A DNA stretch of 51,591 bases from the NCBI GenBank assembly GCA_002269645.1, contig NIVC01004291.1, positions 1-51,591 on the forward strand, in the 5' to 3' direction. Of the stretch, positions 11,241 through 50,131 are shown one piece after another. Origin of the DNA: Macrostomum lignano. Its lineage: Eukaryota. The notes beneath the pieces are model-generated. The model saw nothing but the letters and a program-made list of their open reading frames with translations, did no database searches and was not told the DNA's origin. Positions within the stretch are counted from its first letter, which is position 1. The number at the start of each line of letters is the position of its first letter. The translations under genes were made by a program, and so were the position numbers.

Positions 11241-11295
<55 letters not shown>

Positions 11296-11392
11296 GTGTG
11301 CGTGTCTTAGTGTCTTGTCTATCTGTCTTAGTGTCTGTCTATCTGTCTTAGTGTCTTGTCTATCTGTTTTAGTGTCTGTCTATCTGTCTTAG

Positions 11393-11433
<41 letters not shown>

Positions 11434-11465
11434 TAGTGTCTGTCCGTCTGTCTTAGTGTCTGTCC

Positions 11466-11497
<32 letters not shown>

Positions 11498-12933
11498 TAG
11501 TGTCTGTCCGTCTGTCTTAGTGTCTGTCCGTCTGTCTATCTGTCTCTCAGTGAATCCATGCGCCCCACACACCACCCGCCGTCCCCCAGGCGTCTCCTCC
11601 GGGCAGGCTGGGCGTGTTCCAATTCTCAAGCGGCGGCGCGGTCTCCGCCAACATCTCGCTGAGCCGGGCGGTGGCAGCCGTTCGCTCGCCAGCCAAGGTG
11701 TACGCGGCATTCCGCGGTCACCTGTACTGGCTGTCCACCTCTGGCGACATGAGCCTGGGCATTGTGGACCGCAATGGAAGCAACACGCGGGTGGTGCCGA
11801 TCTCGCTGCGCATCCCGCTGTCGCTGGCGGCCAGCAGCAGCCAGTTAGCAACCGAGTTCGCGGCTGAGATTGACAGGTGACTTGATTAGCTGTGTGGCCT
11901 TCAAATAGGTGCAGTTTAGCGCCTGACTGTCGTGCGGCAGTGCCCGATTCCCCCTGCAAGCTCAGTGACTGGCGTTACCGTGTAACAGACACGTTTTCAC
12001 CCCACGAATCGCCCTTCACCCCACCAACCGCCCTTCACCCCACAGACCGCCCTTCACCCACAGACCGCCCTTCACCCCACAGACCGCCCTTCATCACCCC
12101 ACAGACCGCCCTTCACCCACAGACCGCCCTTCACCCCACAGACCGCCCTTCACCCCACAGACCGCCCTTCACCCCACAGACCGCCCTTCACCCCACAGAC
12201 CGCTGACCGCCCTTCACCCCACAGACCGCCCTTCACCCCACAGACCGCCCTTCACCCCACAGACCGCCCTTCACCCCACAGACCGCCCTTCACCCCACAG
12301 ACCGCCCTTCACCCCACAGAACTTCACCCCTAAAAACTGGCCTTCTCCCCAGAAATCGGCCTCACAAAAATGGGCTCCCCTAAAGTGCCATTTCGGATTC
12401 GCCCACCTGCAGCAACCCGTGCCGCCGGCCCGACAACGCCGGCTGCGAGCAGCTGTGCATCCCCAGGCCGGACCTCACCCACTTGCCAGTCGCCAATCGT
12501 CGGATCTGTCGCTGCGCCTCCCGGTTCCGCTTCGCCGGCACCGTCTCCAGTTCGACCGGCGGCGAGTCCGCGCCGGCGCCGGAGGACGGGCACAGCCGGT
12601 GCCAGGCTCTGAGCACCTTCTTGGTGCTCGCCAGCGCCAGGGACATCGGCATGGCGCCGCTAAACCTCGCCGCCGGTTCGGCATCTTCGCCCGACTACGA
12701 GTCGCTGCACCTGTCCAACGATCTCAAATTTGTGGAATTTGTAGCCGCCGATCCCAGCCGGGGCCGCATCTGCTGGGCCGATGTTGGCCGCCACATCGCC
12801 TGCGCTGGCTTGGACCGGGGCACCGGCGCCGACACTGCGGCCGGCCGTAGCGCCAGGGTGCGAAATGTTTATATGTGTCTGTGTGTCTGCCGGTCTTGTC
12901 TGTGTCTCTGTGTGTCTGCCGGTCTGTCCGTCC

Positions 12934-12967
<34 letters not shown>

Positions 12968-18900: not shown

Positions 18901-21900
18901 CCCCCTGGTCACTTCCCAATAATCCTCCATTGGTCACTTCCCCGATAATTCTCCCCCTAGTCACTTCCCCGATAATTCTCCCCCTAGTCACTTCCCCGAT
19001 AATTCTCCCCCTAGTCACTTCCCCGATAATCCCCCCTGGTCACTTCCCAATAATCCTCCATTGGTCACTTCCCCGATAATTCTCCCCCTAGTAACTTCCC
19101 CGATAATTCTCCCCCTAGTCACTTCCCCGATAATTCTCCCCTAGTCACTTCCCCGATAATTCTCCCCCTAGTCACTTCCCCGATAATTCTCCCCCTAGTC
19201 ACTTCCCCGATAATCCCCCCTGGTCACTTCCCAATAATCCTCCATTGGTCACTTCCCCGATAATTCTCCCCCTGGTCACTTCCCAATAATTCTCCATTGG
19301 TCACTTCCCCGATAATCCCCCCTGGTCACTTCCCAATAATCCTCCATTGGTCACTTCCCCGATAATTCTCCCCCTAGTAACTTCCCCGATAATTCTCCCC
19401 CTAGTCACTTCCCCGATAATTCTCCCCCTAGTCACTTCCCCGATAATTCTCCCCCTAGTCACTTCCCCGATAATCCTCCCCCTAGTCACTTCTCCGATAA
19501 TCCCCCCTGGTCACCTCCCGGATAACCCTCCTTTTTCCGCTCCCGATAATCCGTGAGCATTAAATCAACTGCCTCACCGCCCGCCCAGGTTGCGGCCAGC
19601 ATCCCACAGCGCAGGTCTGTGCTGCAGTCAGGCTACGCAGCCAGCTGTCACCGCCTGTCCTGCAGTCACATTTGCCTGCCGCAGTCCCTGTCTGCTGCAT
19701 CATTAACTCTGCCTTCCTGCGCCTGTCCCAGCGGATTCGAGCTCAAGGACTCTGGTTCCTTTTCGCATACTCCACCCACCGTCTGCAGCCCGGCGCCGTT
19801 TACTTGCAGCCCACGCGAGTTCACCTGCCGGCGCCGGCGCCAGTGCGTCCCGCTGTCTGCGCTGTGCGACGGCCGGCCGGACTGTCACGACACCACCGAC
19901 GAGTCCTGCTGCGATCGGACGCGCGGCCTTCGCGACGTCAAGTCCCTGCCCTGTCGGGCGGTGAGTGAAGGGCGGCGAGATTTTTTCAGGGCTTCCAAAT
20001 GCGGCTCTTTGGAGCAATTGAAGTAGTCTAATCTTCATTAGGTAGCCATTTCAATTCTCTGTACGCCACAGAGAATGGCCACAGCCACAGAGAAAACACT
20101 TGCAGATCCCTATGCCTTAGATGCCTATCCCCCAGATGCCTATCCCCCAGATGCCTATCCCCCAGATGCCTATCCCCAGATGCCTATCCCCAGATGCCTA
20201 TCCCCCAGATGCCTATCCCCCAGATGCCTATCCCCCAGATGCCTATCCCCAGATGCCTTTCCCCAGATGCCTATCCCCCAGATGCCTATCCCCCAGATGC
20301 CTATCCCTATCCTCCAGATGCCTATCCATATCCTCCAGGTGCCTATCCCTATCTACTAGGCCCCTATCCTTATTCCCTCATGTCCAAATCCTCATTCCCC
20401 ATATCCAAATCCTCATTCCCATATCCAAATCCTCATTCCCATATCCAAATCCTCATTCCCCATATCCAAATCCTCATTATTAATATCCAAATCCTCATTC
20501 CCCATATCCAAATCCTCATTATTAATATCCAAATCCTCATTCCCCATATCCAAATCCTCATTATTAATATCCAAATCCTCATTCCCCATATCCAAATCCT
20601 CATTATTTATATCCAAATCCTCATTCCCTCATATCGAAGTCCCCATTCCCAGTTCCCAGGCTAAACACAAATCCATAAATCATAAATTTATTCCTGTCAT
20701 TTCTCCAGCAAATTTCCGGCCGGCCTCAGTGCCTGGCGCTGGCCCTCTGGTGCGACGGCGCGCCCCAGTGCTCCGACGCCTCGGACCAGAGCGAGGCCTT
20801 GTGCTCCGAATCTGTCGTCACAGAATCTCGCGTTGCTGAGGCGGCCGCTGCTGCGGAGGCCGCCGAAGCGTCGGGCTTGGCGCCTTCGTCGAAGCCGCCG
20901 ATCGGCCATCCTGGCGATGCCTCCGCAGGCATGATGAGCGGCCACGGCGTGTTCGTCTACCTGCTGGTGCCGCTGCTGATTGGCGTCGTGGTGCTGCTGC
21001 CGCTGCTGGGCTACTGCTGCACCCGGGACAAGCCGGCCCTGCGGCTGCACGTGCCCGAGATGGCCGAGATGCGCCCCCTGCCAGCCTCGGCCACTGGCGG
21101 GGCCTCGCGGGCTGCAGCCGCCGCTTCTGTGCGCGATGACAAGGATCCCGAAACGATGGACGACGAAGATGATGATGCAGGCGATGGCGACGACGACGAC
21201 GAACTGGACTTTGACGACGATTTCGACCACCAACAGCAGCTGCCGCGCTGTCGAAGCAAGGAGGACCTGTCGTCTGTGGCTACGTCGGCCGCGGCCGCCG
21301 CCGCTCGAGCAGCGTCCAGTTCGAAGTCGTCCAACTCGATGTCCAGCCAGCAGCAGCAGCAGCTGTGCGAGTACGTGGAAACCCTGAACCCGCCGCCGAG
21401 CCCGTGCACCGACTGCTCCAGCCTGCCAGGCGCCGCGGCCGCCGCCGCCAGATTTCACGACTTCGACGACGCCAGTCGGAGCGGCAGCGATGCGGCAGCG
21501 GCATTTTATTATTCCAATAATAATCATTTTGCATCTCGGCATCGGCGCCAGCGGGGCAGCAGCGGCGGCAGCGGCGAGCAGCAGCAGGAGCTGCTGGTGC
21601 ATCAGCAGCACCAGAGGCATAGCGGCAGTCGGAGACGGAGACGCCGTCAGCGCAGTCGGTCGCGGGCCGCCGCCGCTGCCGCCCCGGCCGCCTCCGCTAG
21701 CGGCGTCGCCGGTCGCCGAGCGCCAGTCTCTTTGATCGCGCCGCCTTACGATTCTCCCTACCACCAGCTGCAGCCTCAGCCTCAGCCTCCTCGTCAGCCT
21801 CGCCAGCACCATCGGCAGCACAGGTCCGCCGGCGGGGCGGCAGTTCGGCATCTTCTAGCTTGGTTGCTATGCGCTCCCCGCCAGCCTATCAGAATCCGCC

Positions 21901-21973
21901 TCCCACGCCTAACCGGGTGTCGGCCTGCACTGACAGCTCCGAGCCGATGGTGTCGGTGCTGCTGAATCGGTGA
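426..21973 (+). CDS. LRP5/6: LRP5/6 (arrow)-like Wnt co-receptor, multi-exon, 5' end probably upstream of the window
   Basis: Exons: 426-718 (tentative), 5414-5716, 7037-7375, 7847-8210, 8867-9013, 10351-10777, 10954-11098, 11590-11876, 12413-12857, 13086-13411, 14240-14774, 16439-17024, 17778-18112, 19589-19960, 20709-21973. All phases are compatible from 5414 onward. YWTD-type motifs: VYWVT, IYWME, IYWID, LAVDW..GNLYWVT, LAVDWATNLLFYID, LAIDPLAGHLYWMD. Four EGF modules (exons at 8867, 12413, 14240, 19589), two LDLa repeats (CDGRPDCHDTTDE, CDGAPQCSDASDQ), a TM helix (VFVYLLVPLLIGVVVLLPLLGY) and cytoplasmic LNPPPSPCTD, the LRP5/6 signature. The tail needs a 1-bp correction near 21835. Confidence 0.9.
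2796..2951. repeat. Long imperfect palindrome (about 62-bp arms), MITE-like
   Basis: ggctgtttctattggcaacacacacatgtaagtcgctattgg ... ccaatagcgacttacatgtgtatgttgccaatagaaacagcc, centred on agtcacgtgact. A partial third arm lies at about 3095-3135. Confidence 0.8.
3200..4861 (-). mobile_element. Decayed IS630/Tc1/mariner-superfamily DNA transposon with about 175-bp imperfect inverted repeats
   Basis: 3200-3375 is the reverse complement of 4688-4861, with scattered mismatches. The interior encodes a broken DDE transposase on the minus strand. Confidence 0.8.
3620..4470 (-). pseudogene. Degenerate IS630/Tc1-type DDE transposase
   Basis: Minus-strand translation across stops and frameshifts gives an HTH (IVEMACQLGVKRSIAYTIV), IFNNEFGFNIW (degenerate IDESG), VINNASSHN (degenerate DNASSH) and QLPPYSPFL.PMENSIFYWKAALKR (LPPYSPxLNPIE motif). 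Confidence 0.8.
5738..7004. repeat. Intronic minisatellite, 19/21-bp units (gtgaatagtgtctgact[ct]ca)
   Basis: Dozens of tandem copies filling the LRP intron 5717-7036. Confidence 0.95.
8308..8796. repeat. Intronic minisatellite, 32-bp G-rich unit (gggtaggggtagcggatccctgaagtatcggt)
   Basis: About 15 tandem copies in the LRP intron 8211-8866. Confidence 0.95.
9065..10301. repeat. Intronic minisatellite, 32-bp unit (ctgatccccatgagatcccggattctgggaag)
   Basis: About 38 copies. They account for the repetitive minus-strand ORFs in the track. Confidence 0.95.
11119..11545. repeat. (TGTC)n microsatellite with tgtcttag variants
   Basis: Visible tetranucleotide runs. A second run lies at about 12880-12965. 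Confidence 0.9.
12012..12330. repeat. Intronic minisatellite, 19-bp unit (cgcccttcaccccacagac)
   Basis: Tandem copies in the LRP intron 11877-12412. Confidence 0.95.
13455..14218. repeat. Intronic minisatellite, 22-bp units (ctgactgattgtctgacaccca / ctgactaaatgtctgacacaaa)
   Basis: Tandem copies in the LRP intron 13412-14239. Confidence 0.95.
14810..16102 (+). mobile_element. Full-length mariner (DD34D) transposon, 1293 bp
   Basis: Perfect 28-bp TIRs (cgaggggcactattaaagttctgagcct at 14810-14837; reverse complement at 16075-16102). TA target duplication on both sides (14808-09, 16103-04). Confidence 0.98.
14972..16039 (+). CDS. Mariner transposase, intact, 355 aa
   Basis: Uninterrupted ORF with N-terminal HTH, WIPRIL (WVPHEL motif), TGDETW, LHDNAPAH and YSPDLAPSD. 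There are 34 residues between the second and third Asp. Confidence 0.97.
   Translation: MAFSQELKLEHRAVIKFLTLEGSKPAEIQSRMASVYADAAPSYATIKRWAAEFKRGRDSLEDDPRCGRPRTAVTADNIQRIQALVDIDQRVKVRELAADTGLSDPQVIEILHQHLHLSKVSARWIPRILTRDQKTARVQYSKLVLDSYDPDPANFLSCCVTGDETWIHHHDPESKQESKQWLPVGSPAPLKARTACSAGKIMLTVFWDAKGPLLLDFLPHKQTVTGAYYADLIARLREAIKENRRGMLSRGVVLLHDNAPAHTSRIAKAAVSVAGFRELPHPAYSPDLAPSDFHLFPHLKRALRGQRFDTDDALKDAATAWFEGCSVQFFQSGIEALRSRCHKCILVGGDYVEKS
16146..16395. repeat. Short-period repeat built on aatcgcc
   Basis: aatcgcc recurs about every 10-11 bp between the mariner and the next LRP exon. Confidence 0.8.
17066..17662. repeat. Pyrimidine-rich degenerate minisatellite (ctctccgccctccctct...)
   Basis: Almost pure C/T on the sense strand inside the LRP intron 17025-17777. 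Confidence 0.9.
18144..19530. repeat. Intronic minisatellite, 27-bp unit (gtcacttccccgataatcctccccctg)
   Basis: Tandem copies in the LRP intron 18113-19588. Confidence 0.95.
20118..20630. repeat. Two abutting minisatellites: 15-bp (gatgcctatccccca) then 21-bp (atatccaaatcctcattcccc)
   Basis: Visible tandem copies in the last LRP intron. Confidence 0.9.
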
Positions 21974-28500: not shown

Positions 28501-31154
28501 GTTCTTGAACTAAAACGAGTGAAAACAAAAAAATTCAATCCTGCAGAAAGTCAACTTTCTGGCCTGCTTCGATTTGATCGCACCCAGAGTTCGAGACGGT
28601 GAGTTGCTCGTTGATATAAATCTGTTCTGGCGCACACTTGCTATTCGTAAATAGTGCTCAGTTCAGGTAGTGTAGAGTGCTCAGTTCAGGTAGTGTAGAG
28701 TGCTCAGTTCAGGTAGTGTAGAGTGCTCAGTTCAGGTAGTGTAGAGTGCTCAGTTCAGGTAGTGTAGAGTGCTCAGTTCAGGTAGTGTAGAGTGCTCAGT
28801 TCAGGTAGTGTAGAGTGCTCAGTTCAGATAGTGTAGAGTGCTCAGTTCAGGTAGTGTAGAGTGCTCAGTTCAGGTAGTGTAGAGTGCTCAGTTCAGGTAG
28901 TGTAGAGTGCTCAATTCTCAGATATTATGCATGCGGCATATGTATCAAGTCGTAAAATTCCCGTTATTAAAAAATCGCGCTCTTAACGCAACGACAGGCT
29001 ATTTTTGTCCCGTGTTTCCAAAGGACTTTTTGTTTCAAATTGGATTTTAGATCAATATTTTAGTTTATGGGAAGATCTACGTGACTTTGACTACTTAAAC
29101 CATCATCGAATAAATCTTTCCCAATCATTCCGAGAATCTCCTCAGATCAGCCCAATAATCTTCCCTATATCATCCCGAGAACCTCCCCAGATCAGTCCCA
29201 TAATCATCCGTAAATCATCCCGAGAACCCCAGATCAGTCCAATAATCATCCCTAAATCATCCCGAGAACCCCAGATCAGTCCAATAATCATCCCTAAATC
29301 ATTCCGAGAATCTCCCCAGATTAGTCCAATAATCATCCCTAAATCATCCCGAGAACCTCCCCAGATCAGTCCAATAATCATCCCGAGAATCTCCCCAGAT
29401 CAGTCCAATAATCATCCCTAAATCATCCCGAGAACCTCCCCAGATCAGTCCAATAATCATCCCTAAATCATCCCGAGAATCTCCCCAGATCAGTACAATA
29501 ATCATCCCAATAATCATCCCGAGAACCTCCCCAGATCAGTCCAATAATCATCCCAATAATCATCCCGAGAACCTCCCCAGATCAGTCCAATAATCATCCC
29601 TAAATCATCCCGAGAATCTCCCCAGATTAGTCCAATAATCATCCCTAAATCATCCCGAGAACCTCCCCAGATCAGTCCAATAATCATCCCGAGAATCTCC
29701 CCAGATCAGTCCAATAATCATCCCTAAATCATCCCGAGAACCTCCCCAGATCAGTCCAATAATCATCCCTAAATCATCCCGAGAATCTCCCCAGATTAGT
29801 CCAATAATCATCCCTAAATCATCCCGAGAACCTCCCCAGATCAGTCCAATAATCATCCCTAAATCATCCCGAGAATCTCCCCAGTCCCCAGATTAGTCCA
29901 ATAATCATCCCTAAATCATCCCGAGAATCTCCCCAGATCAGCCCAATAATCATCCCGAGAATCTCCCCAGATCAGTCCAATAATCGTCCTTAAATCAAAT
30001 CTAGAATCTCCCCCAGATCAGCCCAGTTATCTTTTCTATCGTACCTTAAAAATCTTAACTTTTAGTTGCTATCAAGAGCATCTCGAGTGTTCCGAGATTC
30101 TTCCTCGAACATTCCATTGAACCTGACAACTTTCCGTATTGTTGAGTCCAGAGAATTATTTTAGAATTCATGAAGGTCTTGAAACTACCACTAGAACTTT
30201 CCAAAACGACAAAACGTACTTTATCTCGGCTTCGCAGATGTGGTAGACGCCAAGTCCAGTCCTCGCCGTCGCAAACAGCTGGTGAATCCTGACTTTCCGC
30301 TTGTATCGTCGACGACCTCGGCGACTGCGACTACGGCTTCGACTGCGGTTGCAGCTGCTACCCCTGTCACTGCGACGATTTCTGCCAAGCCTCAGCTTCA
30401 GCAACAGCAGCAGCCGGCGCCCTCGGCCGGCCATTCTAATGGTCTCGTTGCCACTGGCAACGGAGCTGGAATTCTGACTCGATCATCTCGTCGGGCTTGT
30501 CGCTTCGAGGAAAAGCCGTCATTTAGTCTTTTACAACAACAACAGCAGCAGCAGCAGCAACAGAAGCGAAAGCCTCAATTCTGCTGCGCCAAGTGTCACC
30601 AGTTAATGCCAAATCGACCCGTTCGGGCACCGTTGTCGTCGGTGGCAACAATTGGCCAAGCAGCGTCTGCTGCGCCCGCCAGTTCTTGGTGTCCAACCTG
30701 CATTGCTTCTTGCGCTGCAACCGCTGACATCGCCATCGGCCTGCCGTGCTGTCCGCCATCGACCCCGGCTAGTAGCGGCAGTGGTGAGTCATGGGCCGAA
30801 CTCTTATCAGTTTTCTGATTGTTGTAATGAGGTTACCCACATTATTTCTTATCGATCGCTTTATGTAGATGTACATTGGTTTACCCACCTCACTCCATTT
30901 TTTATCGATCGCAAGGTCTACAGTGACTAAACCCACCAATTTGCGCAGGAAATCAGTCAACTGGTTCGACAACAAGCGACAAGTCACCGAAGCAGGATCC
31001 CAATGAATCATTTGAGTTCATTCTGCCCTTGGGCCGAATTCGACGGTCTGAAAAGAACTTGCGACTTGAGAGCCTGTTAAGTAAACTAAGCCGGAATAAT
31101 AGTCACAATAGCGACAACAACAAAGACGGTGTAAGCCGCATTAACGGCCAGTGA
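25512..31154 (+). CDS. Uncharacterised multi-exon protein (helical N-terminal part, Ser/Thr/Ala- and poly-Gln-rich region, CxxC...CxxC)
   Basis: Phase-compatible exons 27473-27562, 27935-28048, 28547-28598, 30238-30783 and 30949-31154 (stop TGA 31152-54). Exon about 27165-27384 needs a 1-bp correction at 27246-48. The 5' exon 25512-25634 is tentative. No family recognised. Confidence 0.65.
26286..27163. repeat. Intronic minisatellite, 36/37-bp unit (gaggcactgagggcacaggggcactgac[t]tgccaatt)
   Basis: About 24 tandem copies. Confidence 0.95.
27672..27903. repeat. Pyrimidine-rich low-complexity repeat (atctctccc-type)
   Basis: Inside intron 27563-27934. Confidence 0.8.
28103..28395. repeat. Intronic minisatellite, about 30-bp unit (cttcaggtgtgggtgccgcc...)
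   Basis: About 10 diverging copies. Confidence 0.85.
28654..28913. repeat. Intronic minisatellite, 23-bp unit (gtgctcagttcaggtagtgtaga), about 11 near-perfect copies
   Basis: Head-to-tail copies with no spacers. Confidence 0.95.
29115..30025. repeat. Intronic minisatellite, variable unit of about 42-45 bp (ccccagatcagtccaataatcatccctaaatcatcccgagaa..)
   Basis: Tandem copies in intron 28599-30237. Confidence 0.9.
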
Positions 31155-34358: not shown

Positions 34359-34361
34359 TTC

Positions 34362-34433
34362 CTCCCCGACCGGGAATCGAACCCGGGCCTTCCACGTGAC
34401 AGGCGGAGATACTGACCACTATACTATCGAGGA
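34362..34433 (-). tRNA. trnD-GTC: tRNA-Asp (GTC)
   Basis: Reverse complement TCCTCGATAGTATAGTGGTCAGTATCTCCGCCTGTCACGTGGAAGGCCCGGGTTCGATTCCCGGTCGGGGAG folds as a 72-nt cloverleaf with GTC anticodon, G discriminator and intact A and B boxes. Confidence 0.97.
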
Positions 34434-35435
34434 GTCGGTTTAAGCACTTCCGCAATGCGTTTTTGACGTCCATTTGAGTTTGGTTTGCCTCTTGTTTGCT
34501 TGACTAGGCAGGCCTAGGTAGGCAGCTGCAGCTGGTAGTGGTAGCTAGAGGTTGCACCGTTGCAGAGAGTTACGATTTGACTGGACCCAGAGTTATTAAA
34601 TAATAATGGATCATGGAATTATTCTGTACTGTTAAATTACTTAGTACTATTATAAATTATTACGTAAAAACGAATAAGGAGCTTATGGTAATTAATTGCA
34701 TCCAGAATTTTTCTTGGATCAGCTGACCCTATTTGCGTTTTGATCTTAATCAACCTCCCTTCTTAGGACTTAGCTTTGCTTAACAAAACTACAAGTGAAT
34801 CAGCAAGGCTACAAGTGAATTAAATATTAAATTAACTAACTGGTCCATTTGGCTTATGTGGCTTAATACTCGTAAGGTCAAGGATACGAAAATCTTAATT
34901 TGTCTTTAGCTTTTAGGCAGAAATTTATTCTTCAAACTGCGAGAAATTTAACAATAGGCATGGCTGAACATACTACTTAAAAACGAGTTATACGTAGAAT
35001 TTAACAAGATTACCAAGATCTGCTTTTGCTTTCATACTGGATAAATATACTAGCACTCCAGCCATAACTACCATTCGATTTACTTTGAGATAAGGCAAGG
35101 CCAACTGCTGCATTAAAGCCATTTTAAAGCTGCTTGTTAATTACAGATTCATCAGCTTTTTACAAACAATAACAGGTCCAAACAGCCCAGCTATTAGGCA
35201 TCATCTATAATTTGATGCACTAAAATTCTTCAAGCCTTTATATTCAACTGCTATAAGAATCGACACTGCCGAAATAAATTGTAAGGCTCGAAGTTCAGTA
35301 ATACTTGACACTCGAAATTGAAAATTAAAGTTTAGTTTCTCTGGACAACGGTAAAAAAATTGACGGAAGATTTGTGTGCACTCCCGGCTTAGTAATATTT
35401 GTAATTTTGTACAGAGGTGCTTGAATGAGCCATCA

Positions 35436-36088: not shown

Positions 36089-39000
36089 TCAGTCACCATC
36101 CTTCACAATGTGCAGGTAGATTGTACACTCGCTTCCCGTGTCTCCTTCGCCATCCTGACCCTGACAGCCATCGCAGAGCCCTGACCTGGCCAACGGCTTG
36201 TGCTGGTGTTGCTGCACAGTGGCATAGCTGCACTCCCCGTCAGCTTCCGGTGAGGGCACTCGTTGCTAAAATTTCCGTTGCATTATTTTTTATTTAAAAG
36301 TACTCAATTGAAACTTTGAGCTTCAATCAACTCACATTGTCGGTGGCCATGGCTACGGGCCAGCTGTTTGGCAGCATGGAATTCTCAATGCTAGTCTTTG
36401 GTTCCCTCGCGGTGAAGGCGCTGGACTCATTTCGAGTTCCAGCTTCATCAGTTCTTTTTGTACTTCTTGAACCTGTTCTCTGGCGCTGAACATGCGAAAG
36501 TTGTTGCTGAGTGCTTCTGCTTATGTAGTAGGTAACATTGACTGTATTACTGCCTACTACAGCATCTCCACTCGCTCTACTACAGAATCTCCCGTTTCCC
36601 TTCTACAGCATCTCCACCCGCTCTACTACAGCATCTCCCATCACCCTACTACAGCATCTCCCATTTCCATACTACAGCATCTCCCATCGCCCTACTACAG
36701 CATCTCCCATTTCCCTACTACAGCATCTTCCATCACCCTACTACAGCATCTCCCATCACCCTACTACAGCATCTCCCATTTCCATACTACAGCATCTCCC
36801 ATCGCCCTACTACAGCATCTCCCATTTCCCTACTACAGCATCTTCCATCACCCTACTACAGCATCTCCCATCACCCTACTACAGCATCTCCCATTTCCAT
36901 ACTACAGCATCTCCCATCGCCCTACTACAGCATCTCCCATTTCCCTACTACAGCATCTTCCATCACCCTACTACAGCATCTCCCATCACCCTACTACAGC
37001 ATCTCCCATCACCCTACTACAGCATCTCCCATTTCCATACTACAGCATCTCCCATCACCCTACTACAGCATCTTCCATCACCCTACTACAGCATCTCCCA
37101 TCACCCTACTACAGCATCTCCCACAGCCTCGCCCAAAATCCATGCACAGGGAACTCACAGCAGCCCTTATAGCAGCGGCTGAAATCAAAAGTACAAGCAG
37201 TACGCCTGCGGCTGCGCAGCCAGAGACAGCGGCGCCAGTGACGGTGCCAGATAAATGCGAGTCGGGCGACCTGTCGTCTAGAAAAATTGCTGATTGAATA
37301 TCTTTGATGATTCACTGCAAATGCGCACAGCAATGCTTGACAACTTACAGGCGTTGGGCTCGGGTGGCTCTTGCACACAAAGTGAGATTCCAGCAAAGCT
37401 CATGTAGGCGTCGTTGGCGCTATTTTTATCCAATACGTATCGCCTTAGTAGGAGCATCTTCACCTGCGCGTGTTCGAAATCGAGATTTTATACTCCGAGG
37501 ATTTTCCCTCAGGAGATTTTCCCTCAGGAGATTTTCCCTCAGGAGATTTTCCCTCAGGAGATTTTCCCTCAGGAGATTTTCCCTCAGGAGATTTTCCCTC
37601 AGGAGATTTTCCCTCAGGAGATTTTCCCTCAGGAGATTTTCCCTCAGAAGATTTTCCCTCAGGAGATTTTCCCTCAGGAGATTTTTACAAAAATTGCACT
37701 AAGTAAATATGCTCGGGCGGATGACACATGATACAAACTGAATCAGAACCAGGTATCGCATGGTAGATTGTCTTGTATGTTTAACGATTCAACGTACAAC
37801 GTGCATGTCGTTGTTTAACACTTTTATTGTCATTGTGTCGAAATGAAAACCTCGATCTCCCACAAGAAAAATCCTAAATCCACCCTGCGCGGATGATTTT
37901 TAATATGCAGTTACTACACTTGACTCTGCATTGCTTCAGTTCACCCAGCTGTAAAATGGCTGCCAGCATTAGCTGGGCCCATGGGGTAAATGAGGGTGTG
38001 TGTAGCGACCCCTCCCCCCAGTCCTTGGACTGAACAGCCGTACGCAGCCTTCAGATGGAGTTGCTGAGATGTCAGTGCACATGAGGCGATTGCTGAAATG
38101 CTTTGACTCATGGAGGAGGTTTTGCTGAGATTCCAAGGGTCAGTTGGAAGTTGTTTGGTAGGTCAAGCGAAGGGTAGATCAAAGGGAGAGTCAGGCTTAA
38201 GCCATGCTAAAAGGGAGGCTTTGATGCCAAAGCTCACAGTCATGCTGATATCTCAGGCTAGACCCGCATATTGCAGTTTCAGCAATTGCACAACAGTTTA
38301 CACTGAATAGGCTGCATTTACGCACCTGAGCGCTGCAGTACACTGTGAGAGCCTCTCCCTTCTCCACGCGATCATCCTTTGGTTTGGTGATTCCGCACAG
38401 CTTCCAGCCACTTCTAGTACCTCTGAAATAGCCGCTGATATTCCGATTCGAGCAGTGCTCATCACTGTTGAAGCTGTCGGAGGCGGAAGAGCTGGTCCAA
38501 ATTTCAATTCCAACAGACCTGTTGAACACCTTGGTGGCAGAGTCTGATTGAGAGATTCGGATGGGGAGCGCGTTTTGAGTTAGGACTGCTTATTGCCAGT
38601 GGGGTGAATTGAAATTGACATCTCAAATTCAGACGAAAAAATCCTGCATAAATGAACTCATAAGTGCCATAACATTCACCATTTCTGCCCGCAATGCTGA
38701 TGCAGTCAATATTCACAGACAAATTGAGCTGAAGCAGGAACCAGTGGTAGCCAGAGTCTGCCTGTCCTTTGCCTTTGGAATGATAATACAGGTAACTATG
38801 CTCGCCTTGTAGCAACTTATTCTCTTCTAAAAGGCTTCTGCTCCAAAAGCAGCCATGATTGAGTTTTGATGACTGCCAGGCAATAATAACAGTTTCCTTG
38901 CCGACGAATAATGAAGAATCTGAAAGGGCAAATATTGCTTGACCAATTAATTGATTAAGTGAACTCATGAATTGAAGGTGTGTCAGTATGTGTGTGTGAC

Positions 39001-41038
39001 ATCCAGGTGGATCGGTGAGTGAACTCATGAATTGAAGGTGTGTCAGTATGTGTGTGACATCCAGGTGGATCGGTGAGTGAACTCATGATTGGCAGGTGTG
39101 TCAGTATGTGTGTGTGACATCCAGGTGGATCGGTGAGTGAACTCATGAATTGAAGGTGTGTCAGTATGTGTGTGACATCCAGGTGGATCGGTGAGTGAAC
39201 TCATGATTGGCAGGTGTGTCAGTATGTGTGTGTGACATCCAGGTGGATCGGTGAGTGAACTCATGAATTGAAGGTGTGTCAGTATGTGTGTGACATCCAG
39301 GTGGATCGGTGAGTGAACTCATGAATTGCAGGTGTGTCAGTATGTGTGTGTGACATCCAGGTGGATCGGTGAGTGAACTCATGAATTGAAGGTGTGTCAG
39401 TATGTGTGTGACATCCAGGTGGATCGGTGAGTGAACTCATGATTGGCAGGTGTGTCAGTATGTGTGTGTGACATCCAGGTGGATCGGTGAGTGAACTCAT
39501 GATTGGCAGGTGTGTCAGTATGTGTGTGACATCCAGGTGGATCGGTGAGTGAACTCATGATTGGCAGGTGTGTCAGTATGTGTGTGTGACATCCAGGTGG
39601 ATCGGTGAGTGAACTCATGATTGGCAGGTGTGTCAGTATGTGTGTGACATCCAGGTGGATCGGTGAGTGAACTCATGATTGGCAGGTGTGTCAGTATGTG
39701 TGTGTGACATCCAGGTGGATCGGTGAGTGAACTCATGAATTGAAGGTGTGTCAGTATGTGTGTGACATCCAGGTGGATCGGTGAGTGAACTCATGATTGG
39801 CAGGTGTGTCAGTATGTGTGTGTGACATCCAGGTGGATCGGTGAGTGAACTCATGAATTGAAGGTGTGTCAGTATGTGTGTGACATCCAGGTGGATCGGT
39901 GAGTGAACTCATGATTGGCAGGTGTGTCAGTATGTGTGTGTGACATCCAGGTGGATCGGTGAGTGAACTCATGAATTGAAGGTGTGTCAGTATGTGTGTG
40001 ACATCCAGGTGGATCGGTGAGTGAACTCATGAATTGCAGGTGTGTCAGTATGTGTGTGTGACATCCAGGTGGATCGGTGAGTGAACTCATGAATTGAAGG
40101 TGTGTCAGTATGTGTGTGACATCCAGGTGGATCGGTGAGTGAACTCATGATTGGCAGGTGTGTCAGTATGTGTGTGTGACATCCAGGTGGATCGGTGAGT
40201 GAACTCATGAATTGAAGGTGTGTCAGTATGTGTGTGACATCCAGGTGGATCGGTGAGTGAACTCATGATTGGAAGGTGTGTCAGTATGTGTGTGTGACAT
40301 CCAGGTGGATCGGTGAGTGAACTCATGATTGGCAGGTGTGTCAGTATGTGTGTGTGACATCCAGGTGGATCGGTGAGTGAACTCATGAATTGAAGGTGTG
40401 TCAGTATGTGTGTGACATCCAGGTGGATCGGTGAGTGAACTCATGATTGGCAGGTGTGTCAGTATGTGTGTGTGACATCCAGGTGGATCGGTGAGTGAAC
40501 TCATGATTGGCAGGTGTGTCAGTATGTGTGTGACATCCAGGTGGATCGGTGAGTGAACTCATGATTGGCAGGTGTGTCAGTATGTGTGTGTGACATCCAG
40601 GTGGATCGGTGAGTGAACTCATGATTGGCAGGTGTGTCAGTATGTGTGTGTGACATCCAGGTGGATCGGTGAGTGAACTCATGATTGGCAGGTGTGTCAG
40701 TATGTGTGTGTGACATCCAGGTGGATCGGTGAGTGAACTCATGATTGGCAGGTGTGTCAGTATGTGTGTGTGACATCCAGGTGGATCGGTGAGTGAACTC
40801 ATGAATTGCAGGTGTGTCAGTATGTGTGTGTGACATCCAGGTGGATCGGTGAGTGAACTCATGAATTGCAGGTGTGTCAGTATGTGTGTGTGACATCCAG
40901 GTGGATCAGTGAAGAATGTCGTGAGATATATTCACCTTCAGAGGCAGGCTGGGCTGTGACAAGTGGTAGGCACCAGCTACACCAGCAGCTGCCAACAAGC
41001 GCCAGTAAGGCTGTTCTATAACAAAATTTGGTTTTCAT
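36089..41038 (-). CDS. Type I membrane protein with an F-type-lectin (FTP/discoidin-fold)-like ectodomain, about 380 aa
   Basis: Seven phase-compatible exons: 41038-40936, 38919-38680, 38543-38326, 37463-37349, 37277-37159, 36506-36336 (acceptor least certain), 36265-36089. Signal peptide MKTKFCYRTALLALVGSCWCSWCLPLVTA. FTP-like motifs AWQSS, YYHSK, HWFLLQL, IAGRND and EIWTS. TM GAAVSGCAAAGVLLVLLISAAAI. Tail contains SYATV and TIYLHI. Confidence 0.8.
36552..37123. repeat. Intronic minisatellite, 23-bp unit (ctactacagcatctcccatcacc)
   Basis: About 25 copies. Confidence 0.95.
37499..37684. repeat. 15-bp tandem repeat (gattttccctcagga), about 12 copies
   Basis: Near-perfect copies next to a lectin-gene acceptor. 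Confidence 0.95.
37915..38075 (-). mobile_element. Possible L2-clade LINE/SINE 3' fragment
   Basis: Minus strand ...ccattttacagctgggtgaactgaagcaatgcagagtcaagtg resembles the conserved L2/SINE tail as recalled from memory. Not searched. Confidence 0.35.
38957..40908. repeat. Intronic minisatellite, 58/60-bp units, partly arranged as a 118-bp higher-order repeat
   Basis: Unit gtgagtgaactcatga(ttggc/attga)aggtgtgtcagtatgtgtg[tg]tgacatccaggtggatcg. ORF-track starts recur every 118 bp. Confidence 0.97.
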
Positions 41039-42937: not shown

Positions 42938-43591
42938 ATGAACTTGATTTCTGAAAGCAGCATGCAGCACAGCGACAAAGACGGTTTAGAAGACTTCGCC
43001 GATTCTCAGCACTCGCCATCAAGCGACTACTATGAAGATGGTTTCATCGTTGCAGACTTTGCGGTGTACAACAGCAGCAGCAGAGTGGTCGACGGGAAAT
43101 TTGGTCATCAGAGTGGGGATCAGGCGAGCATCGGGATCTCCTGCGCCCAGTGCAAGAAGCCGTTCTATTCTACCCGAGCGCTGAAGCAGCACGCTAGCCG
43201 AGAGCACAGCTCTGCAGCCAGACCGTTCGTCTGCGATCGGACTGACTGCCGCAAGGCCTTCAAAACTCGGTTCGGACTAAAGCGTCACTCGATGTCGCAT
43301 TCGAACGAACGGCCGTTCAAATGCGACATCTGCGGCCGCGGCTTCCTGGAGAAGGGCCACCTGCAGGTGCACCGTCGGATTCACTCCGGCGAGCGGCCGT
43401 ACAAGTGCCGCCACTGCGACTGCAGCTTTGCTCACAAGCCGCACGCGGTTGAGCACGAGCGAATCCACAGCGGTGAACGCCCGTTCGAGTGTCGTCAGTG
43501 CGGCCGGGCTTTCAAACGGCTGACGCATCTGCGCAATCATGAGAAACGCTTGCACAGGGCGGGCGCTACGGCTGATGCTGCACTGAGCTAG
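42938..43591 (+). CDS. C2H2 zinc-finger protein (5 fingers), single coding exon, 217 aa
   Basis: Fingers CAQC..H..H, CDRTDC..H..H, CDIC..H..H, CRHC..H..H and CRQC..H..H with HSGERP-type linkers. AATAAA at about 43628. Confidence 0.92.
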
Positions 43592-44163
43592 AGGCACAAA
43601 CTCGCATGCATCAGAGACAGAATGCTCAATAAAAATAACATAGCGTTTCATTACGGAAATAAAAAATCACAACTGTTTACTGAAGTCTTTAAAATGTTTG
43701 TGAAGTCTTAAAGTCTTTAAAAATGGTTTTAGAGTTTTTTGCCTTGTATCAAGAGCTTGCAAAGCAGTTCTAAACAAACACGTGAGGGAACTTGACACTT
43801 CACTGGGGTAACGCATCATACAGTGTCTGCAGTACTCGTACCTAAAAATCTAAAAATAGGCCTGACTCAAGTTGATACCGAACGAAAGCTACGCATAGCT
43901 ACAATTAAATAAATTCACTGTGCTCCAGTGCACAATCAGCCCAGTAAACAATGTACATTTCGCGTACACAGAGAGACAGACCACGAAGGCTGATAGCTTG
44001 TCAAAGCTTTATTATTTTTGTATAGGAAATAGTGAAATAGAACTTAAATATGCTGAATGTACATCGACACACTTCTCGTTTAGTATAACACTCCTCTCGG
44101 TTTATTAACCACCCGAGGAGTGTGCTGATATTTTGCACTAGCATCAGGCACAGACGGCACAGC

Positions 44164-46089
44164 ATGGGTTCCAGCATGGCTCAAGCAGCTCACCAGACCG
44201 CCGAGTTGGACTCAACAATCGATGGTGCCGCCTACCTGATCGACTTTCAGGAGCGCCCGTTCTCCAACGGCAGCTGCCGCTTGGCATTTCAGGGCGTCTA
44301 CCGGGGCCGGGGGCCGCTGAACGGCAAGCGCTGCGTCGCCAAGGTGGCCATCGCGACATGTCGCCACGGCGGTGCCCTGGCAGACTACGAAGCCGACATG
44401 CAGGCCAGCAGGAAGGCGGGCAAGCTGGCCGAGCTGTTCAACAAGGAGTTCGTCAGCTCCAAGCCACTGCGGTTTGTGCAGCCAGCGATGGCCACCGTGC
44501 TGACCACTGGCAGCTGCTACTCGCGACGTGGCGACAAAATCCTTGTTGAAGAGTTCATCGAGGGCAGGTACGAGAAGTTCAACAACAATGCCCACTACCA
44601 GAGCGACGAGGTGGCCACCGTGCCCTGCTTCTCGCACTACACCTACTACAAGACTGGCGGCAGGTATCTCGTCTGCGACATCCAGGGCGTCAGGACTTCG
44701 CGAGGATACTGGCTGACTGACCCGGCGGTGCACAGCCGGGAGGGCGGCAAGTTCGGCGACACCGATTTGGGCAGAGACGGCTTCGTGCGGTTCTTCAGCA
44801 GCCACCGCTGCACCAGCGTCTGCATCCTGTTCCCCATCTCGGATTTGAAGTGAGTTGCGTAACTGGCTGCAGCATCCGCCTCTTCAGTCAGTTTTGTCTG
44901 TCACTTTTCTGTCACGCTCTGCCTCTCATTCCTTACTCCTCGCTGCACCTCTCTCCTACCTTCCCCTTCTCTCTTCCCTCCCCTTTCCCTCTCTGCCCTC
45001 CCCTCTCCCTCTCTGCCCTCCCCTCTCCCTCTCTGCCTTCCCCTCTCCCTCTCTGCCCTCCCGTCTCCCTCTCTGCCCTCCCGTCTTGCTATCTCTGCCT
45101 TCCCTCTCTGCCCTCCCGTCTCCCTCTCTGCCCTCCTTCTCTGCCCTCGCCTCTCCCTCTCTGCCCTCCCCTCTGACTCTCTGCCCTCCCCTGTCCCTCT
45201 CTGCCCTCCCCTCTCCCTCTCTGCCCTCCCGTCTCCCTCTCTGCCCTCCCCTCTCCCTCTCTGCCCTCCGTCTCCCTCTCTGCCCTCCCTCTCCCTCTCT
45301 GCCCTCCCGTCTCCCTCTCTGCCCTCCCGTCTCCCTCTCTGCCCTCGCCGCTCCCTCTCTGCCCTCCCCTGTCCCTCTCTGCCCTCCCTGTCTCTCTCCC
45401 TCTCCATCTCTCCCCTACCCTCTCCCTCTCCCCCACTCCCTCTCTCCCCTCTCTACCTCTCCTTCCCTGCATCTGTGTCTTTCTTTCCCTTCAATTTATC
45501 TCACTCTATCTCTTTCTTGCCATTCCAGTTGATTTAAAAATCAGCTTGTCAACTGCCATTGCTAATTTTCTGTGTCAAATCTTTCTCTATTCACTGTCAC
45601 AGCCTCCGTTCTGCACTCCATCACAATTATTTATCCCCAAATCATTGCATTCCCATCGCATCCCCTAGAGCCGGCCAGGACCTGCCAGAGGCGAGCTTCA
45701 ACCTGACCCGCAAGAACTACTGCGGCCGTCGCCTGAACGGCCCTCCCTGCGACTGCTGCGACGGCTCCTGCGGCCCCAGGAACGGCTGCAACTGCTGCGG
45801 CTGCATGCGCAGAGACCTTGAGGAGTTCGGCCTGCTCAAAATTCGAGCCTTAGTCAATCGGGAAGGCGCGGTCTCCAGACTGAGCAGCGAGACTAACAAA
45901 TTCTACTGCGGCAGGAAGAACATGGCTCGGGACCGCATGACTGACGGCTTCTGCGGCCCCAACAACGGCAACAACTGCCACGCCTGCCGCCAGCTCGACA
46001 TCCAGTCCAGGGACCGCTACTATCTCATTGTGCAGGCCTGGTTCGGCAAGGCCCTGCCAGAGCCCACCTCCATTGTGCACAGGGCCTGA
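44164..46089 (+). CDS. Alpha-kinase (eEF2K/MHCK family) with two C-terminal Cys-rich repeats, 368 aa
   Basis: Exons 44164-44849 and 45669-46089 (phase 2). Alpha-kinase motifs: FSNGSCRLAF, VAK, EEFIEGRYEKFNNN, FSHYTY, LVCDIQGV, LTDPAVHS, FGDTDLGRDG, FFSSHRCTSVC. Exon 2 has two YCG...DGxCGPxNGxNCxxC repeats. Confidence 0.92.
44945..45470. repeat. Pyrimidine-rich minisatellite (ctctccctctctgccctccc)
   Basis: Fills the alpha-kinase intron. Core similar to 17066-17662. Confidence 0.9.
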
Positions 46090-48003: not shown

Positions 48004-50131
48004 ATGGAAGACTCCGGCTGGAAGGTCGGCCTGTGCAGCGCGGCCACCGGCAAGTTCCTGACGGCCGAGCCATTCGGCTTCAAGCTGAACGTGTCCGCCA
48101 GCTCGTTGAAGAAGCGCCAGACCTGGACTCTGGTGCCGGACGCGCACACGGAGTCATTCGTGGCCCTGCGCTCGCACCTGAATCGCTACCTGTCCGCTGA
48201 CAAGGACGGCAACGTGACCGCCTGCGCCGAGTCGGTGGACACCGAGGAGCGCTTCGCCGTCGAGTATTCCTCAGAAGGGGGAGCTCGCCTGGCCCTGAGG
48301 AGCGTCCTGCACGGCTGGTACTTCAGCGGCGAGGGGGACCAGGTGCGGTGCTTCGCCCGGTCGCCAGTCTGGTGGAAGTGCCAGCTGGCGCTGCACCCGC
48401 AGGTGCACCTGAAGAATCTCAATCGGGGTCGCTACCTGCGGCTGGGCGACGGCGAGATCTCCGGCGACCGGGTCAACCCCTGGGGCGCTGAGAGTCTCAT
48501 CACGCTGATGCAGTCTGTCGACGGCCGAGTGGCCATTCGGGCATCGGACGGGAGCTACCTGAGCCGGACTGGCGAGCTCTCAGCAGAGATGTCCGAGGAG
48601 GTGCTGCTCAGCCCTGAGTTCCACTGCGGTGCGCGCCCGGCCTGGCGTTCAAGGTGAGCTGGAGATCGGGATGCGGTGAGGATGTGATCAGGATGTGATC
48701 AGAATGTGATCAGGATGTATTCAGGATGCGGTGAGGATGTGACGAGAATGCGGCGAGGATATGATGAGAATGTGATATGGATGAGACGAGGATACAGTGA
48801 AGATGCGGTAAGGATGGGATAAAAATTAGGCTGAGGATGATTAGCAAGTTCTTAGACCTTCAAACGGATTGCTATTAAAATCATGGAGCTTTTAGGTGAT
48901 TCAATAGAAGGACTTCCAGAGCGCACCCTGCTCGAACTCTCTCCCACCCATGAATTTGTGCCTAGTAATGAACTCAATCAGCACAACCCATTGCCATTGC
49001 TTAAACGCAGGACTCAAACGGCCGCTACCTCACCAACACTGGGTCCAGCGGCACCACCAAAACAAAAAACCAGAACGTCACGAAGGACGAACTGTTTGTC
49101 CTGGAGGCCAGCTACCCGCAGGTGGCAGTCAAAGCTTTCAACGGCCGCTACGCCAGCGTCAAGCAGGGGGAGCACTCTGAGCTCAACTTGCACCCAAGCT
49201 GATCTTCTGGGCTGAGTCATCGCGTGGCTGGGAGAGAGATTAGCTAGAGTAGGATTTAGGATTAGGACCCGGAGTTCCCCTTGCTAAAGCCTATTTATGG
49301 TTCCCAGAGCCGGGGGAGTGCGCAGAAGCTGACGGAATTTGCTATTTTTGAACTTCTGCTTGGGAAATACAGGGCGAATCCCTTGCCTAACTTTGCTACT
49401 GCTAGTAGAAATACACGATTTTTATCTTTTATTTCTCCTTTAAACAAGATTTCGAAGAGGGAAATATGTGGGATTGATATGAGTTGTACCGAGTAGATGT
49501 GATAGACGAGATTGGAATAGATATGATATAGATGAGAGTGGAATAGATCTGATATAGATGAGAGTGGAATAGATCTGAGATAGATGAGAGTGGAATAGAT
49601 CTAAGATAGATGAGAGTGGAATAGATCTGAGATAGATGAGAGTGGAATAGATCTGAGATAGATGAGAGTGGAATAGATCTGAGATAGATGAGAGTGGAAT
49701 AGATCTAAGATAGATGAGAGTGGAATAGATCTGAGATAGATGAGAGTGGAATAGATCTAAGATAGATGAGAGTGGAATAGATCTGAGATAGATGAGAGTG
49801 GAATAGATCTGAGATAGATGAAAGTGGAATAGATCTGAGATAGATGAGAGTGGAATAGATCTGAGATAGATGAGAGTGGAATAGATTTGAGGTCGCAGGT
49901 CCGACTCGGGTTCAAGTAGATCGACTCGCAGATTGCAGAAAAAGTCCATATTTGATGATGCTTCCCTATAGGTCAGGACTTGAACGTGAACCAGAGCGAG
50001 ATCGAAGCCACGGAGACCTACCAGCTGGAGTTCGTGTCCTCGACTGGCAAGTGGCGATTTCGAACCAAGGACGACAAATTCTGGCGATTGTCCGCCGTGG
50101 CTAACGGAGTCAACGCTTCCGGGGATGCGGG
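48004..50131 (+). CDS. FSCN: Fascin (actin-bundling, singed/FSCN family), 5' three exons; continues past the window
   Basis: Exons 48004-48653, 49011-49167 and 49972-50131. Motifs: [24 protein letters not shown] (PKC-site region), [31 protein letters not shown]|[25 protein letters not shown]|QDLNVNQ, ETYQLE. Needs a 1-bp correction at 48636-38. The second donor reads GG. Confidence 0.93.
48670..48830. repeat. Degenerate repeat of about 11 bp (gatgtgatcag-type)
   Basis: In fascin intron 1. Confidence 0.6.
49497..49888. repeat. 26-bp minisatellite (gatagatgagagtggaatagatctga)
   Basis: About 15 copies in fascin intron 2. Confidence 0.95.

Follow-up and report, generated by a model that had tools for sequence, protein, structure and literature searches.

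A putative lectin-like type I receptor gene with two tyrosine motifs in its tail, unannotated in Macrostomum lignano

Does a stretch of the Macrostomum lignano genome at which no gene has been called hold an intact receptor gene and, if so, what kind of receptor would it encode? The question is raised by contig NIVC01004291.1 of the assembly GCA_002269645.1 (Mlig_3_7), which was analysed over its full length of 51,591 nucleotides (positions 1 to 51,591 of the forward strand; hereafter the window). A preliminary description, made from the letters alone, had placed at positions 36,089 to 41,038 a seven-exon gene for an F-type-lectin-like receptor with a tyrosine-motif tail. Our analysis points, with a probability that we would put at roughly 0.7, to an intact, unannotated M. 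lignano gene encoding a lectin-like type I receptor of a small, lineage-restricted family, the tail motifs of which would serve as docking sites.

Gene model and predicted product

Seven exons on the minus strand (Table 1) were assembled from the raw sequence and its three-frame translation, and join into a coding sequence of 1143 nt for 380 aa that ends in a TGA stop codon. All six introns start with GT (GTGAAT, GTGAAT, GTGCGT, GTAAGT, GTGAGT and GTGAGT) and end in a pyrimidine-rich tract followed by AG, and the phases at which the exons are entered (0,1,1,0,1,0,0) match one another. No long open reading frame (ORF) is visible at the locus because the introns and the sequence past the stop codon consist largely of minisatellite arrays. 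The proposal that the gene is hidden as a single ORF and that its seven exons join was rebuilt exactly, with canonical borders and coherent phases. The frame proposed for exon 6, on which the tail depends, was also borne out, as it is the only open one and stops interrupt both others, so that the tail is kept.

Judged from its sequence, the product is a type I single-pass membrane protein, consisting of a signal peptide, one ectodomain, a transmembrane helix and a cytoplasmic tail. The signal peptide, MKTKFCYRTALLALVGSCWCSWCLPLVTAQ, was read directly from its hydrophobic h-region and a cleavage-like site between TAQ and P, and the transmembrane helix from a hydropathy maximum at residues 241-265, with a peak value of 2.29 over residues 244-262. 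Between them lies a beta-rich, Cys-containing ectodomain of about 185 aa with four N-x-S/T sites, and the tail that follows the helix comprises 118 aa (R263-D380). This is the architecture originally described, including the tail sequences SYATV and, at the C-terminus, TIYLHI.

The source assembly holds two more copies of the locus, on NIVC01001160.1 and NIVC01000061.1, both of which keep the seven exons, all 12 splice sites, an intact ORF, the signal peptide, the transmembrane helix and both tail motifs. Their exons differ from those of the window at 2 and 3 of the 1143 nt, respectively, with E302G in both and L96I in the second. Among the copies, divergence amounts to 0-1.3% in the unique short introns and in the upstream flank, and most intron mismatches fall within minisatellites that are prone to misalignment. 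Redundancy of this assembly is known (PMC5730564), and three copies of the window locus fit it. Since exons, introns and flank are all nearly identical, a selection comparison of the three copies is uninformative. No paralogous exons were found elsewhere in the window or in the other two copies of the locus.

The paralog family and the predicted fold of the ectodomain

The whole 380-aa protein had no match at E<=0.01 in a word-indexed protein database, and a single-sequence search of PDB sequences likewise returned no match. When the translation of exon 2 was compared with 1.84 billion representatives in a full HMMER search, seven matches were obtained, six of them true, at 36-44% identity. 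Five of the six true matches were UniProt entries of M. lignano, the automatic names of which are uninformative, and the sixth, P0006, came from a JGI metagenome contig. A family profile search of 5.8 billion proteins returned eight proteins only, none with a Pfam domain; two metagenome scans, one with the family profile and one with P0006, gave no confirmed further relatives; and literature searches on F-type lectins in Platyhelminthes and on the paralog locus tag gave no result. The UniProt names of P0001-P0005, P0008, P0014 and P0015, such as Sushi, CUB, MATH, Fibrinogen C-terminal, LAM_G or Pep_M12B_propep 'domain-containing protein', match no domain found in their sequences and are not trustworthy.

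One paralog, P0013 (BOX15_Mlig012084g1, 339 aa), is annotated, with seven exons of 73, 243, 218, 130, 95, 105 and 156 nt on contig NIVC01002544.1 (L004). Its exon phases (0,1,1,0,1,0,0) are those of the window gene, exon 3 measures 218 nt in both, and P0013 and P0001 have the layout of signal peptide, domain, transmembrane helix and tail. The gene model for the window is validated by P0013, because the two share exon number, phases and this order of parts. The domain of P0013 is 41% identical to that of the window protein, and residues invariant in the family are, in window numbering, W49-Q-S-S52, C58-F, R62, E67, H81, D89, G91, H93-W-F95 and Q98, with further invariant positions at a Phe, C145, W161 and C164.

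Other members combine the domain differently. A second tandem paralog lies on L004 at about 9988-13878, 2 kb downstream of P0013, and has three domain exons, three Ig-like exons, one transmembrane exon and one tail exon ending in DCSYLTV...DCTEFLKIVADGD. This gene is uncalled in GenBank and is partly present in UniProt models from an earlier assembly; P0002, a UniProt model, seems to be a read-through that joins both L004 genes. In the P0005 group, the first half of the domain is joined to Ig-like sequence. A eukaryotic metagenomic contig, L005 (1-1598; JGI sample 3300040801, Ga0450804_0569779; 39% GC), has two or more copies of the domain in tandem, followed by an Ig-like exon; the phase-0 junction between its exons 3 and 4 lies where it does in M. 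lignano, and no intron separates the equivalents of exons 2 and 3. The window gene is homologous to at least 4-5 further genes of M. lignano, and in some of these Ig-like domains are added. The family is small and lineage-restricted, with about 8 database proteins, all from M. lignano except one metagenomic contig, and the domain is a mobile module that is present in at least one other organism and very rare in current databases.

Against Pfam, the window protein matched only PF00754 (F5_F8_type_C), at 13.1 bits for the whole protein and 14.5 bits for the ectodomain (E=0.039), the gathering threshold being 28.2, and PF22633 (F-lectin) gave no match to it at E<=10. Among seven family members, PF00754 matched five weakly (best E=0.0084) and PF22633 matched one (E=0.055). 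The eel F-type lectin 1K12 was the top PDB sequence match for both family profiles, at marginal values (E=0.75, then 0.054), in alignments that pair HWF.[VL]QL with PWWRVDL, I.SVTVKGRED with ITSVTITNRGD and GIEIW with GAEI.IG. When the family was compared by hhalign with an alignment of 15 vertebrate F-lectin exons, a score of 27.7 was obtained (P=6e-4, probability 28%) in the same register as with 1K12, as against a mean of 11.4 (standard deviation 2.4, maximum 21.3) for 200 column permutations and scores of 12.4 and 10.2 for reversed profiles. The profile check that had been suggested, with PF00754 and an F-lectin model, was therefore answered in part, by a weak PF00754 match and an F-lectin profile score that beats its permutations; PF22633 did not match the window protein and PF00754 stayed under its cutoff. 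The sequence link to the discoidin/F-lectin clan is real but remote.

The fold was modelled on P0013, in an alignment to which window exons 2 and 3 contributed rows; the translations of exons 4-7 were dropped from the modelling alignment, MAFFT having misplaced these short pieces. For P0013 at full length, the AlphaFold model built from an 8-row alignment was poor (predicted local distance difference test, pLDDT, 49), and its Foldseek matches were all galactose-binding-domain-like (EndoS carbohydrate-binding module (CBM), FVIII C2, 1K12, 3CQO, CBM32, SUN and DOC). The domain-only model was better (pLDDT 72, predicted TM-score (pTM) 0.77) and gave 39 matches at E<=1e-3, again all galactose-binding-domain-like, with target TM-scores up to 0.66; these included XRCC1-N, Bacteroides F5/8C, CBM32, EndoS CBM, FVIII C2, DDR2, neuropilin b1, CASPR2, muskelin and SUN2. 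The F-lectins 1K12 and 3CQO matched the first, poor model at E=3e-4 and are not in the top 50 of the domain-only model, in which F5/8C, CBM32 and XRCC1-N rank above F-lectins and the highest-scoring neighbours are the carbohydrate-binding modules 3nng, 3ggl, 7blg and 2j1a. The models support a galactose-binding-domain-like jelly roll (the discoidin/CBM32/F-lectin superfold) as the predicted fold of the window ectodomain, in agreement with the superfold first proposed for it, as predicted on the paralog. Members of the discoidin/CBM32 group (PF00754; FVIII C2, DDR2 DS, neuropilin b1) are the best structural matches of the P0013 domain, at target TM-scores of 0.5-0.66. PF00754 is also the only Pfam family that matched repeatedly, if weakly, with the window protein far below threshold and at 10-16% identity to any solved member.

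The same superfold is that of the jelly-roll F-type lectins of eel (AAA, 1K12) and striped bass (FBP32, 3CQO), the strand motifs of which are in register with those of the family (WW.VDL with HWF.[VL]QL, I..V.I.NRGD with I..V.V.GRED, GAEI with GIEI), A-x-QSS near the domain start corresponding to WQSS. F-type lectins are defined by the fucose motif HX24RXDX4(R/K) and carry the calcium motif h2DGx (PMC5712786). The sugar-site pattern reported for the window protein, H-x31-RND-x7-R, is present exactly (H81-x31-R113-N-D115-x7-R123) and departs from the fucose motif. In the profile alignment R113-N-D115 lies on R79-G-D81 of AAA and is the sole part of the motif in register, His52 of AAA facing Gly86 of the window protein and Arg86 facing Val120 (Thr in P0013). 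Where AAA has its calcium motif, A-I-D-G-N, the window protein shows L-L-Q-G-E and P0013 V-V-S-D-K, and the vicinal Cys-Cys that follows R-x-D in F-lectins is not present in the window protein. R-x-D itself is missing in three of the seven family members, namely P0004 (GSEV), P0014 (VREV) and the metagenomic copy (TKSD). What is invariant in the family instead is H81 and D89-x-G-x-H93-W-F, and therefore any ligand site would be built differently from the fucose site of F-lectins.

Unlike F-type lectins, then, the window protein has an incomplete fucose triad, no calcium motif and no vicinal disulfide, falls under the Pfam and SMART thresholds, and is predicted to be membrane-anchored with a signalling-type tail. 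Of the label F-type-lectin-like, the predicted superfold and the eel lectin as nearest solved sequence stand; the fucose triad, the calcium motif and a score above the Pfam threshold do not. On the defining motif and the profile tests, the protein is not to be filed as an F-type lectin. The altered glycan specificity suggested for it may be a fair guess, and by analogy with DDR, neuropilin and FVIII C2 its ligand may also be a protein or a lipid. A similar layout, compared by description, is known from Drosophila furrowed/CG9095, single-pass membrane proteins that likewise bear a lectin-like domain of this class; in CG9095, too, the basic triad is incomplete (PMC5712786). Unlike the window protein, furrowed/CG9095 have a C-type lectin domain and numerous CCP repeats in addition, and no resemblance between the tails is known.

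The tail motifs and competing explanations

The tail of the window protein contains two Tyr only, Y336 in ECSYATV and Y372 in the C-terminal ECTIYLHIVKDGD, and both stand in Yxx[VI], an arrangement reached by about 1% of composition shuffles, which makes it mildly unlikely for one sequence. Between the window gene, P0013/P0001 and the second L004 paralog, the tails can be aligned in the last exon only, where the invariant columns are R-V at the start, C-S-Y-x-x-V, and D..S-x-C-T-x-[Y/F]-L-x-I-V-x-D at the C-terminus. The two motifs read ECSYLSV and DCTVYLEIVADAN in P0013 and DCSYLTV and DCTEFLKIVADGD in the second L004 paralog, and the distance between their aromatic residues is 36 in the window gene, 26 in P0013 and 24 in the second L004 paralog. 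The check proposed for the tail, conservation of its tyrosine motifs, came out positive among these paralogs, as both motifs are conserved islands of an otherwise diverged tail across the three lineages.

The consensus of the ITIM (immunoreceptor tyrosine-based inhibitory motif) is S/I/V/LxYxxI/V/L and that of the switch motif (ITSM) TxYxxV/I, with 25 residues between the motifs in PD-1 and BTLA (PMC8631942). TIYLHI of the window protein and TVYLEI of P0013/P0001 conform to the ITSM, and the second L004 paralog has TEFLKI, which lacks the Tyr. Motif 1 (SYATV in the window protein) falls outside the canonical ITIM consensus, since all three lineages have Cys at position -2. The earlier reading by the ITSM consensus can thus be kept for motif 2, in two of the three lineages. 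The replacement of Tyr by Phe in an otherwise intact motif 2 suggests recognition without phosphorylation, or a non-signalling paralog variant. An immunoreceptor tyrosine-based activation motif (ITAM) was rejected, the Tyr spacing being 24-36 residues, not 6-12, and the +3 residues V/I; a hemITAM was not adopted, as there is no conserved DEDG-YxxL pattern.

Compared with receptors that carry ITIMs and ITSMs and act through SHP-1/SHP-2 or SAP (PD-1, BTLA, PECAM-1 and the SLAM family), the family has a T-[IV]-Y-x-x-I that fits TxYxx[V/I], and the spacing of 25 in PD-1 and BTLA compares with 24-26 in the paralogs and 36 in the window gene. Unlike in those receptors, the ectodomain of the window protein is not Ig-like, Cys is found at -2 of motif 1, and Tyr is exchanged for Phe in one paralog. 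Such a likeness, being one of short linear motifs, would imply no common ancestry. Flatworms have Src kinases and Syk kinases with tandem SH2 domains (PMC2820527), and phosphotyrosine signalling is therefore available to them.

From these data, we propose that the loops at one end of the barrel would form a binding site of the ectodomain for a ligand outside the cell, a glycan being the most likely one. Other members of the fold bind in this way; the fucose triad of canonical F-lectins would not be used. Cytosolic partners would dock on the tail at its two motifs, CSYxxV and, at the C-terminus, [DE]CTx[Y/F]LxIVxDG[DN]. Signalling through the tyrosine motifs is plausible, though unproven. Phosphorylation of the tyrosines, with subsequent binding of SH2 proteins to an ITIM/ITSM-like pair, is the mechanism that we think most likely, and we hold it tentatively, at somewhat less than even odds. 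An immune or gamete role and recruitment of SHP2, both raised in the preliminary description, are speculation. A bolder scheme could also be envisaged, in which flatworm-restricted, glycan-sensing receptors carry a paired tyrosine module (CSYxxV, about 25 residues, then a C-terminal T[IV]YxxI) that recruits a tandem-SH2 phosphatase or adaptor. It would amount to an inhibitory or switch circuit in the style of ITIM/ITSM, arisen independently of vertebrate immunoreceptors and mounted on a lectin-like rather than an Ig-like ectodomain, with the Phe paralog as a signalling-dead or constitutively binding variant; we regard this scheme as distinctly unlikely.

Several points weigh against the view of this locus as an active, lectin-like docking receptor. 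Within the tail, motif 1 has Cys rather than S/I/V/L at -2, the Tyr-Tyr distance of the window gene is 36 rather than about 25, and Phe takes the place of the second Tyr in one paralog that keeps the rest of the motif. For the ectodomain, every sequence link to a named family lies below curated thresholds, and the structure models, built on 8-10 sequences, depict a paralog that is 41% identical and not the window protein itself. At the level of the gene, all three genomic copies of the locus are devoid of a gene call, there is no transcript evidence for the gene, no protein identical to the window protein was found in a collection of 15 billion proteins, and the three copies, judged by their exons and introns, are too alike (0.2-1%) and too young to show purifying selection.

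Another possibility is that the motifs are YxxPhi sorting signals (YATV and YLHI) for a clathrin adaptor mu subunit, and the protein an endocytic or cargo receptor moving between surface and endosome rather than a phosphotyrosine receptor. In the window gene, as in P0013, the two Tyr belong to Yxx[V/I]; both motifs have acidic residues beside them, and the conserved neighbours (C at -2/-3, L at +1, IV at +3/+4) exceed what an SH2 consensus needs. Binding to mu2, however, requires Tyr, and Phe stands in its place in one paralog that otherwise retains the second motif complete; the spacing of 24-26 residues in the paralogs, moreover, matches bivalent tandem-SH2 ligands. We consider sorting unlikely, though far from negligible, and judge in much the same way a cell-adhesion or matrix-binding molecule, in which the ligand of a discoidin-like domain would be protein or lipid, and the tail would provide a connection to cytoskeleton or junction proteins. 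The structural neighbours DDR2, neuropilin b1, CASPR2 and FVIII C2 are in keeping with adhesion, as are the Ig-like exons added in sister genes (three in the second L004 paralog, and in the P0005 group) and the tandem domains with an Ig-like exon in the metagenomic relative, such combinations of this kind of domain with Ig being typical of adhesion molecules. The top structural neighbours are carbohydrate-binding modules, however (3nng, 3ggl, 7blg, 2j1a), and the nearest sequence is a lectin.

Two further explanations fare worse. The locus could be a silent or decaying duplicate that is not expressed and hence not annotated, and it is indeed uncalled in all three copies although the neighbouring zinc-finger (ZNF), alpha-kinase and fascin genes are called, with no matching protein in UniProt, NCBI or other sources and with at least two of the three exon differences between copies altering the protein (L96I, E302G). 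The GenBank annotation of this assembly, however, left out transcripts overlapping repeat annotations (PMC5730564), and the introns of this gene and the sequence past its stop codon are full of minisatellites, which together provide a plausible technical cause for the missing call. The second L004 paralog is also uncalled in GenBank and yet partly present in UniProt models, and the ORF, the 12 splice sites, the signal peptide, the transmembrane helix and the tail motifs are intact in every copy; a silent copy is therefore improbable in our view. Least credible of all is a bona fide fucose-binding F-type lectin serving as a membrane-anchored pattern-recognition receptor. Here 1K12 is the best solved-sequence match, the family's R-x-D falls on R79-G-D81 of this eel lectin, its HWF.[VL]QL on PWWRVDL and its GIEIW on GAEI.IG, and membrane-anchored proteins with F-lectin domains are known, as in Drosophila furrowed/CG9095 (PMC5712786). 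It is contradicted by the departure from HX24RXDX4(R/K), with Gly86 opposite His52 in ungapped register and Val120, or Thr in P0013, opposite the third basic residue, by the loss of R-x-D in P0004, P0014 and the metagenomic copy, by LLQGE or VVSDK in place of h2DGx, by the missing Cys-Cys past R-x-D, by the silence of PF22633 on the window protein and by the absence of F-lectins from the top 50 matches of the better paralog model.

Features of the locus, its surroundings and their significance

The positions of the exons, tail motifs, repeats and neighbouring features are collected in Table 1. Intron 1 measures 2016, 360 or 1062 nt among the three genomic copies. About 25 further minisatellite arrays occur in the window, of which they occupy a large share, with array periods of 15-118 bp.

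Table 1. Positions of the receptor gene, its repeats and the neighbouring features in the window
Feature	Position	Strand	Remarks
Exon 1	40936..41038	-	103 nt; ATG at 41038; signal peptide (aa 1-~30); exits in phase 1, likewise in paralog P0013
Exon 2	38680..38919	-	240 nt; 79-aa translation; N-terminal half of the lectin-like domain; WQSS, CF..R, YYH81S, D89-G-Y-H93-W-F, ISIAGR113N
Exon 3	38326..38543	-	218 nt; D115 and second half of the domain; GIEIWTS, HC, W..CG, TVYC
Exon 4	37349..37463	-	115 nt; last domain strands (LLLRRYV ... YMSFAGISLCV) and stalk; equivalent exons in L004 and L005
Exon 5	37159..37277	-	119 nt; stalk and putative transmembrane helix (aa ~241-262 = 37233-37168), then R263
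Exon 6	36336..36506	-	171 nt; part of the tail next to the membrane; entered and left in phase 0; little conserved; P0013 has a phase-0/0 exon at the same place
Exon 7	36089..36265	-	177 nt; starts QRVP; conserved tail end and TGA
Tail motif 1, C334-S-Y336-A-T-V339	36215..36232	-	C-S-Y-x-x-V invariant in window gene, P0013/P0001 and second L004 paralog
Tail motif 2, C-terminal E-C-T-I-Y372-L-H-I-V-K-D-G-D	36092..36130	-	S.CT.[Y/F]L.IV.D kept C-terminally by each of the three paralog lineages
118-bp (58+60) minisatellite filling intron 1	38958..40912	.	Copy number varies among the three genomic copies
Minisatellite array, intron 3	37500-37685		
Minisatellite array, intron 5	36553-37123		
Minisatellite array directly past the stop codon	35437-36073		
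tRNA-Asp(GTC) gene	34361-34434	-	~1.65 kb downstream of the receptor stop codon, same strand
Large multi-exon LDL-receptor-related-protein (LRP)-like gene	~7046-21965	+	YWTD-type propeller exons judged by eye
LRP-like gene, LDL-receptor class A exon	19553-20026		PF00057 E=1e-9
LRP-like gene, GC-rich ORF	20799-21965		Transmembrane segment and low-complexity tail
Mariner/Mos1-type transposase ORF	14906-16039	+	Intact, 377 aa; PF01359 E=4e-22 and Mos1 helix-turn-helix domain
ORF with long polyglutamine and alanine/serine-rich runs	30240-30818	+	192 aa; no Pfam match
C2H2 zinc-finger gene	42938-43591	+	
Alpha-kinase gene	44122-46089	+	PF02816 E=6e-43
Fascin-domain gene	48004-48657	+	PF06268 E=6e-21

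Among the neighbours, the transposase ORF sits amid the exons of the LRP-like gene, and the order of the ZNF, alpha-kinase and fascin genes is identical in all three genomic copies.

The absence of the receptor gene from public annotation is probably due to its minisatellite-packed introns and the repeats that follow its stop codon, and similar repeat-laden genes may be missed systematically in this genome. The family itself would be an undescribed one of receptors, in which a very divergent discoidin/lectin-like module, unseen by Pfam at curated thresholds, is combined with a two-motif tail. M. lignano is a model flatworm open to transgenesis and RNA interference. If the tail motifs are phosphotyrosine docking sites, the family would offer a simple invertebrate system for lectin-coupled tyrosine signalling; if they are not, what is gained would still be a gene with a correct model and, within the galactose-binding-domain superfold, a divergent branch that is new.

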